Shown here piece after piece: positions 24,999-51,616 of a DNA stretch of 64,000 nt; the stretch's first letter is position 1, and each line of letters starts with the position of its first letter. The notes beneath the pieces are model-generated. The model saw only the letters and a program-made list of their open reading frames with translations, did not search any database and had not been told where the DNA came from. The position numbers and the translations under genes are program-made. The DNA is from Antechinus flavipes (lineage: Eukaryota), in contig NC_067400.1 of assembly GCF_016432865.1 (NCBI RefSeq), positions 612,870,001 to 612,934,000 of the forward strand, written 5' to 3'.

Positions 24999-26748
24999 AT
25001 GCCATCGGGACTCAGCTTCCCGATCTCCTTCATTCTGGCGCTCTGGGTGCTTCAGGGCTCAGGGGACCCCGACGTCCCGCGCCCGAGGCACTGCAGCCTC
25101 GGACATTATTACTCCCTGAATCCTAAGACACTGGAGGCTGTCAAAACGTTCAGGGATTTATATGTGAGTCACGGAGCCGGGATTTCCGAAAGCCCAATTC
25201 ACTAGCCCTTCAGCCCTTCCCAGACCAGGGGTCCAGATAGCCAGGCTCCCCACCTTTTGCCCCGAGCTGCTCAGGGACGCAAGTATCTGGGAACGTAGCC
25301 AGTTTGTCAGCATAGTGGAGCAAGAGACCGCTGAGACCGCTGGGATACCCGCATTCGAATTCTGCCCAGGATATCGCCTGGCTGTGGAATATAAGCCTTA
25401 GCTTCCTTAGCAGACGATGGGATGATGACCAGGGGTCCTCCCCAGGTTGTGGCTAAGGCTAAAGGACAGAATACAGGGGAAAAGCCTTGCAATCCTCCCA
25501 GAACTCTCTGGAGCTATAGTCCGCGAGCTGGCTTCGAGTTCGGGGGTCACCTGGGGCACATCCCGGCTGGGGGACTCTGGCTAAGTCACCTCCGGGAGTT
25601 CTAGGTGATTCTCTAAACGGTAGAGGAGTGGTGACCTACCTTGGCAGCTGTAGCCCCCGTCCTAAGGGTTTCTGAGTGCGCTCTATTATTATGAGATTCG
25701 ACGTCCCGGAGCCCCGAGCCCCGAGCCAAGCCTCCCCGAGTCTCAGGACCCAGCACACTCTAGCCTCGTCCCTTTCCCAGCAATCTCCCAGGAGTCCCCC
25801 CTCTATCTAGGGGATAGAGTTCCCCATTCCTCCTAAAGGTTTTCTTCCTCCTCCTCCTTCTCCTCTTCCTCCTCCTCCTCCTCCTTTTCCTTCTCCTTCT
25901 CTCTCAGGAGCAAGAGATGCTGAGTTGGGGAAAGAGGAATTGCACGTTTTTTAGGCAAAAGGAAACCCGGAAAGTCTCGGTGAGACCCTAGGACACGGGA
26001 AAGGGGAGGGAACCCTGGGAGGGTGCTCCCAGGACCATCTCTCCAAGTGGCGTGTCTCCCCCAGCCCTGCACCCGGCTCCATCAGGTGGCCCTCGCTCTG
26101 GCCGCCACCGAGTCCGTTCTGCGGAACCTGAGTCGCCCCGCTCTGGCTGCCAGCGCCGTCCCGGTCCTGGAGCTGCTCTCGGCCGTGAGGAGCGACGTGG
26201 TCGCCTGCGTGTCCCGGCCCAGCCTCGGCTCCCTCTCTCAATCTTCCGCTAGTCCTGGCGCCCCAGACTCTGAACACGGTGGAGCCCGGGCGGGCAGATC
26301 CAGGGAAGCGTCCCGCTTAGCGGAACGCCGGCTTGCGGAAAATCCCTCCATTGCACAGCCCTGGACGCGGGCCCCAAAGAGAGCGCGCCCCGGACAGGGG
26401 GGATGGGCTCAGCCCCTAGATTTCGACACTCAAGCGCCCCCCATCCACGGCAAGCCGGACGGAGTGGATCGGGGCTCCGAGAAAAAGAAAAGAAAACACA
26501 AAGCCAAGACATCGGTAAGAGTGTAATGAGGCGGGAGGAAGGAGAGCCTGAAGCCTGCGGGGCGGGGAAGTTGGGGGGGGAGGGGAGAAGGGGAGCGATC
26601 CCGAAGGGAAAAAAGCGAGGATGCGTGCGTTCTCCGCTAGGAAAGTCCCCGATGTCGCGAAGTCCGGACGGTTCTCAGCCTCCTGAGGCTGCTCACCTTT
26701 GACCTGAAGCTGGCGATTCTCGCAGGGCCCTGTGCCTCAGCTAAGTAG
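24999..26748 (+). CDS. IFNL4: Interferon lambda 4 orthologue, 5 exons (214 aa if intron 3 is spliced, 264 aa if retained)
   Basis: join(24999-25163,25908-25979,26065-26208,26359-26514,26641-26748), all phase 0. HCSLGHYYSLNPKTLEAVKTFRDLY / EQEMLSWGKRNCTF / PCTRLHQVA...LELLSAVRSDVVAC / ...KKKRKHKAKTS / ESPRCREVRTVLSLLRLLTFDLKLAILAGPCASAK* align exon by exon to human IFN-lambda4; six Cys and the N-C-(S/T) sequon are conserved. The exon 3/4 boundary is uncertain. Confidence 0.9.
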
Positions 26749-50231: not shown

Positions 50232-51616
50232 ATGATGCTTCCTCAGGCTCTCCCGCTACTGCTTTCTGCCCTGATGTCAGGGACGATTTCGAAGTCCCTG
50301 GCCCCGACTCTCAGTAATCTTCCCCCCGAGAGGAGCTGCCAGATCAGCCACTTCAAGTTTCTTTCACCTCGGGAGATGGAAACTTTCAAGGTGGCCAAGG
50401 ATGCCTACGTAAGTTCCTGGCGGGCTTTTTGTACTCCTGCCCTCGCACTTCCCGGGGGTCTAACTTCGATCTCTTTTACTGTGCTCCAATACTCATCTCT
50501 TGCACTTAGGTCTAATCTTCATCCTTCCTTCTTGAGCTCTGTCCTTTTCTCTGTTTCTAACCTCCATCTTACATCGCAAGGACCTAGAAGGGTCACAAGC
50601 CTTTAATGTCTTCCTCTTCATCCCCTCAAGGAGAAGACCATGCTTCAGACGGAGAGGAAATGTAGCTCCAGATTCTTCCACAGAAGCTGGGACCTTCGGC
50701 AGCTGCAGGTAAGAAGGGGCGCTCCCCACCTGTCAGTCGCACATCACCTTTCTCCAAAATCTGTCGTATCCCCATTTCTTTTCCCCAATCTCCTCTCACC
50801 TGTCAGTCCCTCATCACCTTTCTCCAAAATCTGTCGCATCCCTATTTCTCTCCCCCTTCTGTCGGTGCTCCCCCGTCTCTTCCCCTGTCCCCTTCATCAG
50901 CCTCTCCCTCACAACGCCTCTCATCTCTCCCCTCACAGCTGTCAGTTCGGCCCGTGGTCTTACAGGCTGAGCTGAAATTGACTCTGGAGGTCTTGAAAGC
51001 CGTAACCAAGCCGGAGTTGGACAGCGTTCTGGCTCAGCCCCTACAAACGCTCAGCCACATCCACCAAGAGATCCAAAGCTGTGTGAGTACCGGAGGGTGG
51101 GCGGGGCTCCCCTGGACCAATGGGCATGGAGCTGTTCCCTGTCTCTCAGGTGCCTGGGTCCCTTGCAGTGAGGCTGAGGGGATGCAATACCTGGAATCTC
51201 CTCCTCCCCCTGCCACATCCATCAAATGCCTGGGTCCCCTTCCTTTTATTAAGTCCACCCTCTCCCTACACAGGTTACTTCCAGGCTCTCTAAAGAACAC
51301 AGGCCTCCAGGCCGCCTGAATAATTGGTTGAACAAGCTCAGTGAGGCTAGAAAGGTGAGTTAGAAAAGCTTCAGATCTACTGATGGCACCGGGGGATGGA
51401 AAGGAGGAGTCAGAGGGGACCCCAGAGTCTGGGCAGCAAGAGACTCTGTCTCCCTCTGAGGGAGGAACAAGGATTCAGGATTCCCCAGAGAACCCTTATC
51501 CCTGTGTCTCTTCTTTTTAGGAGGCTCACAATTGCCTAGAAGCATCCATTATGCTCAATCTCTTAGGAATCCTGACCAGAGACCTCCGATGTGTAGCCTC
51601 TGGGGACCTATGTTGA
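50232..51616 (+). CDS. Interferon lambda, IFNL3-like, copy A, 191 aa
   Basis: join(50232-50408,50631-50708,50939-51082,51274-51354,51521-51616), all phase 0 GT-AG. MMLPQALPLLLSALMSG...SCQISHFKFLSPREMETFKVAKDAY/EKTMLQTERKCSSRFFHRSWDLRQLQ/LSVRPVVLQAELKLTLEVL...HQEIQSC/VTSRLSKEHRPPGRLNNWLNKLSEARK/EAHNCLEASIMLNLLGILTRDLRCVASGDLC*. Six Cys, consistent with the three-disulfide IFN-lambda2/3 pattern. One-to-one orthology to human IFNL1/2/3 is not resolvable. Confidence 0.95.

Follow-up and report, generated by a model that had tools for sequence, protein, structure and literature searches.

How does an interferon gene without a usable donor for its third intron reach its last exon? The question is raised by IFNL4, a type III interferon gene, of the marsupial Antechinus flavipes, which lies on the + strand at positions 24999-26748 of the stretch of 64,000 nucleotides (nt) analyzed here (contig NC_067400.1, positions 612,870,001 to 612,934,000, the window in what follows). 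Its product, IFN-lambda4, is an odd member of the family, poorly secreted, selected against in humans and with a basic, disordered and so far unexplained segment midway through its fold. The family pattern is five coding exons and four phase-0 introns; here introns 1, 2 and 4 are canonical and intron 3 has no usable donor. A first-pass annotation made from the letters of the window had seen at this point a nearly dead donor, a 150 nt intron and an elongated exon 4. We think it probable, from comparison of the sequences, that the intron 3 position is not spliced in four Australian marsupials, and that exon 3, the DNA derived from intron 3 and a short basic homologue of exon 4 would be read as one exon in Antechinus, two further dasyurids and the wombat. 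In Antechinus this fused exon would have 450 nt (26065-26514), the GTG at 26209 would be a valine codon instead of a donor, and the precursor would have 264 amino acids. The gene is divided as follows (a slash marks an exon boundary in the splice sites).

24999-25163, + strand: exon 1 (ATG, signal peptide, helix A; 55 codons), donor TAT/GTGAGT; IL28A positions 2-27.
25908-25979, + strand: exon 2 (24 codons, EQEMLSWGKRNCTF..., N-glycosylation motif NCT), donor TCG/GTGAGA.
26065-26514, + strand: proposed fused coding exon, 450 nt, 150 codons (exon 3, former intron 3 and exon-4 homologue).
26065-26208, + strand: exon-3 homologue (48 codons, helices C-D), ending ...GTC GCC TGC (VVAC); IL28A positions 55-101.
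26209-26214, + strand: former donor GTGTCC, proposed to be read as Val-Ser codons.
26209-26454, + strand: putatively translated counterpart of the eutherian and platypus intron 3, 246 nt, 82 codons, net charge +5, predicted to be disordered.
26309-26325, + strand: 17-nt motif CGTCCCGCTTAGCGGAA, encoding ..SRLAE.. in Antechinus.
26343-26358, + strand: tract TCCCTCCATTGCACAG, taken for an acceptor in the first-pass annotation and here read as the codons PSIAQ.
26453-26454, + strand: AG aligned with the eutherian intron-3 acceptor (GGCAAG/CCG), a likely relic acceptor.
26455-26514, + strand: exon-4 homologue (20 codons, PDGVDRGSEKKKRKHKAKTS, net charge +5), followed by the donor TCG/GTAAGA.
26515-26640, + strand: intron 4, 126 nt, GTAAGA...CGCTAG, a true intron in which none of 9 marsupial indels is a multiple of 3.
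26641-26748, + strand: exon 5 (35 codons plus TAG; helix F, ESPRC...GPCASAK); IL28A positions 130-154.

We have compared the orthologous loci of the Tasmanian devil Sarcophilus harrisii (L001), Sminthopsis crassicaudata (L002) and the wombat Vombatus ursinus (L003). The distance from the end of exon 3 to the donor of exon 4 was 306 nt in Antechinus (26209-26514, 102 uninterrupted codons followed by GTAAGA), 294 in Sarcophilus, 288 in Sminthopsis and 324 in Vombatus, all of them multiples of 3, and this stretch was free of stops and frameshifts in the four species. This was the check on related marsupials that had been proposed for the open frame. Four indels, of 9, 12, 9 and 18 nt, separate the marsupials within the interval and again all are multiples of 3; over introns 1, 2 and 4 of the same genes 9 out of 36 gap runs were multiples of 3, and over introns 2 and 4 none out of 12. 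For Antechinus alone the open frame is not beyond chance, given a GC content of 64% and just 2 stops in each of the remaining frames. When neutral change was simulated along a tree with the divergence seen here (at least 113 substitutions in 276 columns), all four frames stayed open in 1.3% of the runs, or about 6% conditional on Antechinus being open, and the joint chance with the indels (0.25^4) is roughly 2e-4, all these probabilities being rough. Judged by these figures, the open frame across the four species is more than chance.

The gene is well preserved around the interval. The dN/dS (ratio of nonsynonymous to synonymous substitution rates) summed over exons 1, 2, 3 and 5 was 0.23-0.44 between dasyurids and wombat, values that indicate that IFNL4 is under purifying selection on both sides of the interval (dN/dS and charge were summed exon by exon, and the Antechinus exons were searched separately, so that no joined sequence was used). 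Exon 5, located downstream, shows the third-position pattern of coding DNA and can be reached in frame only through the interval. What is conserved in the insert, judging from the alignment, is the frame and not the residues, as expected of a disordered linker, and since its residues are nearly neutral, the case for translation is made by the frame, the stops and the splice sites. Across the four species, 27 of the 30 columns of an island at window 26405-26434 (GGGCTCAGCCCCTAGATTTCGACACTCAAG) do not vary, even at synonymous sites. When 30-nt windows are compared over exons 2, 3 and 5, introns 2 and 4 and the interval, none is better conserved and only a stretch of exon 2 equals it, and its location amid nearly neutral surroundings hints at a constraint at the nucleotide level.

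Elsewhere in the family intron 3 is a true intron. It starts at TGT/GTGAGT or TGC/GTGAGT in five eutherians, Rhynchocyon (175 nt), Chrysochloris (184), Mustela (226), Tenrec (207) and Myotis (230), is out of frame or contains stops in all five, and is followed by an exon 4 of 75 nt in the four species where this exon is complete. The platypus IFNL4-like gene (XP_007658342, L015) has TGT/GTGAGT, an intron 3 of 455 nt and an exon 4 of 30 codons. Also the two IFNL3-like copies of the window keep TGT/GTGAGT at the end of exon 3 (donor G at 51083 and 59692), as the first-pass annotation had read, and the intron 3 of copy A has about 190 nt, read by eye. The spliced intron in eutherians, platypus and paralogues indicates that the state of the marsupial IFNL4 is derived. 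In the platypus intron 3 (L015:3241-3695) there are three tandem units, GGTGCCTCAGTTTCCTCATC..GGGGATTC, that look like MIR/Mon-type SINE cores and account for its larger size. Exon 4 of Myotis lucifugus (L013, about 2113-2160) runs into a block of Ns, and hence the aberrant C-terminus of the NCBI model P0012. In vespertilionid bats, open reading frames (ORFs) of unspliced contigs (P0032, P0045 and P0083) stay in frame all the way from exon 3 to exon 5, exon 4 and both introns included, with their GTGAG donors intact. Open in-frame introns are a recurrent feature of IFNL4.

Against this ancestral pattern, the splice sites of the marsupials were scored with an approximate position-weight matrix, of use for ranking only. 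The six bases that follow exon 3 are GTGTCC in Antechinus, GTGAGC in Sminthopsis, ATGCCC in the devil and ATGACG in the wombat, so the donor position toggles between a Val and a Met codon and GT is missing in two of the four species, where the ATG leaves no possible intron start. A U12-type AT-AC intron was considered for devil and wombat and rejected, the two hexamers being by eye unlike ATATCC. The Antechinus site TGC/GTGTCC (26208/26209) scored -8.1 bits and the Sminthopsis TGT/GTGAGC -0.2. For comparison, 11 donors were scored at introns 1, 2 and 4 of the marsupials and gave 2.5 to 4.7, with the exception of wombat intron 4 (about 0), and genuine eutherian intron-3 donors gave 0.2 to 1.0. 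The earlier description of the Antechinus donor as nearly dead is supported, and the donor is effectively dead. At the acceptor side, the site at 26358 scored 2.6, in Antechinus only; it is weak in Sminthopsis and wombat, and in the devil its pyrimidine tract loses 12 nt by deletion. The alternative acceptor that had been pointed out at 26454 is present, and is the true counterpart of the eutherian one, but it is weak in all four marsupials; its use would give a protein of 182 amino acids. In the whole devil interval the donor scores stay at or below -3 and the acceptor scores at or below 0.

Several observations weigh against the fused exon and have to be set beside the above. Besides the roughness of the probabilities and splice scores, the insert evolves close to neutrality (dN/dS 0.6-0.97) and shows no codon periodicity (the three codon positions are invariant in 45, 51 and 50 of 72 cases). 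In two of the bat ORFs (P0032, P0045) introns 3 and 4 are open and in frame despite intact donors, and GC-rich IFNL4 introns can be open by chance. The Sminthopsis donor is about as good as a genuine eutherian intron-3 donor, and the Antechinus acceptor at 26358 scores like a genuine acceptor. A cryptic GCC/GTGAGG in exon 3 (window 26185-26190, 24 nt before the exon end), kept in Antechinus, devil and wombat, scored -0.3, also like the genuine eutherian intron-3 donors; if used, the last eight codons of exon 3 would be lost, the conserved Cys included. The sample consists of four marsupial species of two orders, and no transcript evidence for the fused exon was found, the NCBI and Ensembl models being in conflict and looking ab initio.

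The alternative that survives best is an exitron-like alternative splicing, in which a long-loop form of 264 amino acids and a short-loop form of 214 or 182 would coexist, both productive since the interval is in frame and free of stops. With either acceptor the interval is indeed divisible by 3 (150 or 246 nt), the Sminthopsis donor and the Antechinus acceptor at 26358 come near to working sites in their scores, and intron-retaining IFNL4 transcripts are abundant in human and gorilla (PMC5110018). But such splicing has to start from the very poor Antechinus donor, or from no GT at all in devil and wombat, and in the devil interval neither a donor nor an acceptor is plausible. Neither acceptor is conserved as an acceptor, and the sole other GT of Antechinus (offset 70) would shift the frame. 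We give this alternative a small chance.

Far less can be said for a decaying IFNL4, whose open frame would be incidental to GC-rich sequence. The near-neutral dN/dS of the interval and the open introns of bats would fit it, as would the incomplete state of the database models and of the devil gene, in which exon 1 and the intron-1 acceptor were not found. Yet exons 1, 2, 3 and 5 are intact and constrained as said above, neither the NCS/T motif nor any cysteine has been lost, Antechinus, Sminthopsis and wombat have canonical splice sites at introns 1, 2 and 4, none of the four indels breaks the frame, and the devil gap sits in a visibly garbled assembly; decay is thus very unlikely. The region upstream of exon 2 in Sarcophilus (L001:2900-3990) is ridden with homopolymers, unlike other marsupials, and has CCCG instead of CAG before exon 2; the gap is probably an assembly or polishing problem and not a broken gene. 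The weakest candidate is the short model of the first-pass annotation, a constitutive 150-nt intron (26209-26358) with a 52-codon exon 4 and 214 amino acids, hardly credible in spite of the good polypyrimidine tract and CAG at 26358 and the in-frame length, because the donor is so poor, two species have no GT, the devil has lost by deletion the acceptor tract, which is weak in Sminthopsis and wombat, and the frame of these 150 nt is kept across species, which a constitutively removed intron does not need.

The fused exon remains the preferred structure, and the facts read from the Antechinus letters fit within it. The 150-nt interval is in frame, stop-free and ends in the pyrimidine-rich tract; positions 26359-26514 are 156 nt, i.e., 52 codons, ending in ...KKKRKHKAKTS and followed by GTAAGA; and the two protein lengths that had been proposed are correct sums (55+24+48+52+35 and 55+24+48+102+35 codons). 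Between them, the comparative data favor the 264 amino acids, with about 77-82 residues rich in Pro, Ser, Arg, Ala and Gly inserted after helix D, and disfavor the 214. The division into an intron and an elongated exon 4 does not hold, since the acceptor at 26358 lies inside the counterpart of the eutherian intron 3 and looks like an acceptor only in Antechinus. Nor is the basic tail KKKRKHKAK a novelty, as it corresponds to the ancestral helix-E cluster of IFN-lambda4 (of RRHKARR type in eutherians, KRRHKPRR in human; PMC11742915). From the sequence we infer that the mRNA would be read through the interval and the protein made, and that it would signal.

Every public model continues across the interval, but elsewhere the models are at odds. 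That of Antechinus has no exon 1 and extends into intron 4, that of the devil has no exon 1, and that of Sminthopsis skips most of exon 2 and keeps intron 2. In the wombat, the NCBI model has a spurious N-terminus and the Ensembl one leaves out two pieces whose 5' boundaries, read by eye, have no GT. These models are not independent evidence for the transcript. The marsupial proteins found in word-index searches were those of Antechinus, Sarcophilus, Sminthopsis and Vombatus alone, with none from opossum, koala or macropods, a sample that gives no date for the event. No paper on marsupial IFNL4 was found in the literature.

As to the identity of the gene, the contiguous ORF of the window was 100% identical in a protein search to the NCBI protein annotated as interferon lambda-4-like of Antechinus flavipes. 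Exons 1, 3 and 5 separately matched the Pfam family IL28A (PF15177) at collinear positions of the profile (E values 3e-4 to 1e-3, 19.5-21.3 bits). All three scores stay under the 27-bit cut-off for a whole protein since an exon is a fragment of it, and PF15177 was also found on the database models of the gene. The best matches outside marsupials were interferon lambda-4-like proteins of eutherians and platypus, which places the gene nearer to IFNL4 than to IFNL1-3. Two short, primate-like isoform proteins among the matches (P0014, P0029) were left aside, and none of the contigs compared is taken to be human. In the alignment (A3 numbering) C221 and C247 were invariant and N47, C48, S49, C62 and C108 nearly so; the conserved cysteines and the NCS/T N-glycosylation motif were all found in the Antechinus exons. 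The gene is thus the IFNL4 orthologue of Antechinus, and the missing intron 3 is a difference of gene structure, not an argument against orthology. Two IFNL3-like genes lie downstream on the same strand, at about 50.2-51.6 kb and 58.8-60.2 kb of the window. Directly 5' of the exon-2 acceptor there is a (TCC/CTT)n polypyrimidine microsatellite of about 75 nt (window 25830-25905), with a similar tract in Sminthopsis and wombat.

If the interval is read through, its origin has still to be accounted for. We lean, with fair confidence, towards an exonisation of intron 3 and not a precise loss of the intron followed by expansion of exon 4. In a seven-species alignment, positions 26209-26454 of Antechinus face the eutherian intron 3, whose acceptor coincides with GGCAAG/ at 26454. 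The motif CGTCCCGCTTAGCGGAA was identical at 17 of 17 positions within intron 3 of Chrysochloris (L005:2653-2669) and at 15 of 17 within that of Tenrec (L012, about 1826-1842), and a 17-nt match to Chrysochloris was reached in 1-3 of 300 shuffles. An nhmmer search gave a collinear match inside Chrysochloris intron 3 with E=0.012, a borderline value accompanied by an equally strong off-target match. The wombat has AAG/CTGGAG (LE.V) 78 nt 5' of its exon-4 donor, and eutherians have CAG/CTGGAG 75 nt 5' of theirs. The lengths are on a par: the marsupial stretch has 288-324 nt, and intron 3 and exon 4 together have 250-301 nt in the three eutherians for which the two were scored. Finally, in 9 out of 16 comparisons the eutherian exon-4 peptide fell on the final 20-26 residues of this stretch, and in none at its start.

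The other route, in which intron 3 would have been deleted precisely and exon 4 then expanded about fourfold with residues not derived from the intron, is possible but doubtful. It finds an argument in the platypus, where the start of exon 4, GTG CCC CCC TCG (VPPS), resembles the V-S-P-P-S or M-T-P-P-S found directly after the marsupial exon 3, a resemblance that counts against exonisation; likewise the eutherian VRPGSS resembles the Antechinus VSRPSLGS, and MAFFT aligned them so at the protein level. This route has against it the Chrysochloris and Tenrec intron-3 matches and the collinear nhmmer match, the AG/CTGGAG of the wombat as an acceptor relic, the parity of length and the placement of the exon-4 peptide at the end of the loop. 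It also takes two rare events, in a gene without germ-line expression. When the eutherian exon-4 start was slid along the loop without gaps, identity was about 50% at both candidate places, an ambiguous outcome. With nhmmer, the profile of the marsupial interval gave nothing significant against the platypus locus, and that of the exon-4 homologue had no match in the eutherian loci, where the known exon 4 was missed too, so that DNA tests are underpowered at this distance. A start-anchored comparison of intron starts and exon-4 starts was discarded because exon 4 of Myotis contains Ns, which were kept as they stand, and the null distributions differed widely. A metagenome scan with a 20-mer conserved in marsupials gave five contigs whose similarity was limited to a match of about 21 nt, i.e., chance. 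Weaker versions of the 17-nt motif are seen in Mustela and Myotis, and a small CCGC-TTA-GCGG hairpin lies within it. The CGCTTAGC motif has a single occurrence in the window; an origin from a MIR/CORE-SINE, suggested by the MIR consensus, is a guess only.

The predicted precursor would keep the normal helices A, C, D and F of IFN-lambda4 and the conserved cysteines, with about 82 extra low-complexity, predicted disordered residues after helix D, just before the ancestral basic helix-E segment. The insert has 76-82 residues in marsupials, with a net charge of +2 to +5 (63% Ala, Ser, Arg, Pro and Gly in Antechinus), and the exon-4 homologue 20-26 residues and +4 to +6. We have modeled the wombat database protein (P0005:84-331) with AlphaFold2 from a 12-row alignment. 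Helices A, C, D and F had a predicted local distance difference test (pLDDT) of 65-88, with 80-88 in the core helices, residues 115-195 were below 50 and without secondary structure, and the exon-4 homologue was a low-confidence helix. Its best PDB match was the IFN-lambda4 chain of a receptor complex (9bpu_C, TM score 0.80 by target), ahead of IFN-lambda1 and IFN-lambda3.

In human IFN-lambda4 the helix E (KRRHKPRR) is unresolved by cryo-electron microscopy (9bpu) and makes no receptor contact; it limits expression, which is rescued by its replacement (PMC11742915), and the cationic alpha-B/alpha-E cluster has been assigned a role in direct antibacterial activity (PMC11536128). The human segment is disordered and faces away from both receptors, and an insertion here is thus sterically plausible, in what is the most enigmatic region of the protein. 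It is this same disordered region that the marsupial insert directly extends, from about 25 residues in human to 96-108 in marsupials, although the added part is only mildly basic. That the insert alters secretion, retention in the endoplasmic reticulum (ER) or heparin binding, as had been suggested, is speculation by analogy, which gains some plausibility because the human helix E is disordered, off the receptors and limiting for expression.

A basic segment four times longer appears to have been kept in frame in Australian marsupials since before their lineages split, judging from the four genes compared, and marsupial IFNL4 is a natural experiment on what the helix-E region tolerates or does. 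It would also be a clean example of an ancestral spliceosomal intron turned coding and held in frame while its residues drift nearly neutrally. For the annotation of the locus, the fused exon accounts for the conflicting automated models and gives a consistent one. A more daring proposal, which we regard as unlikely, is that intron-3 retention of the primate type was made productive in Australian marsupials, that the disordered extension of about 80 residues is functional, for instance in altering secretion or ER retention or in anchoring the cytokine to mucus or extracellular matrix, and that CGTCCCGCTTAGCGGAA and 26405-26434 are old regulatory elements of RNA or DNA that have come to lie in coding sequence.

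Marsupial IFNL4 can be set beside several known systems. Eutherian IFNL4 (the human p179 type and the genes of Rhynchocyon, Chrysochloris, Tenrec, Mustela and Myotis) shares with it exons 1, 2, 3 and 5, the cysteines and the NCS/T site, the basic helix-E cluster just 5' of ESP(R/Q)C and the phase-0 introns 1, 2 and 4, but has a spliced intron 3 of 175-230 nt and an exon 4 of 25 codons where marsupials have 96-108 uninterrupted codons. The platypus IFNL4-like gene and the IFNL3-like paralogues belong to the same family and end exon 3 in the same way after the conserved Cys, and, unlike marsupial IFNL4, splice intron 3. Intron-retaining forms are the most abundant IFNL4 transcripts after stimulation in human and gorilla (Hong et al., 2016, PMC5110018). 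There, however, retention has been described as non-productive, whereas the sequence retained in marsupials is in frame, stop-free and apparently the sole route to exon 5. Exitrons (PMC10985678) are, like the marsupial interval, multiples of 3, free of stops and inside coding sequence, but they need a working and alternatively used GT-AG pair, and the marsupial donor is gone or very weak in three of the four species and plausible only in Sminthopsis. Seen in this series, the marsupial interval looks like an end state beyond the exitron, an intron that would have become fixed as an exon.

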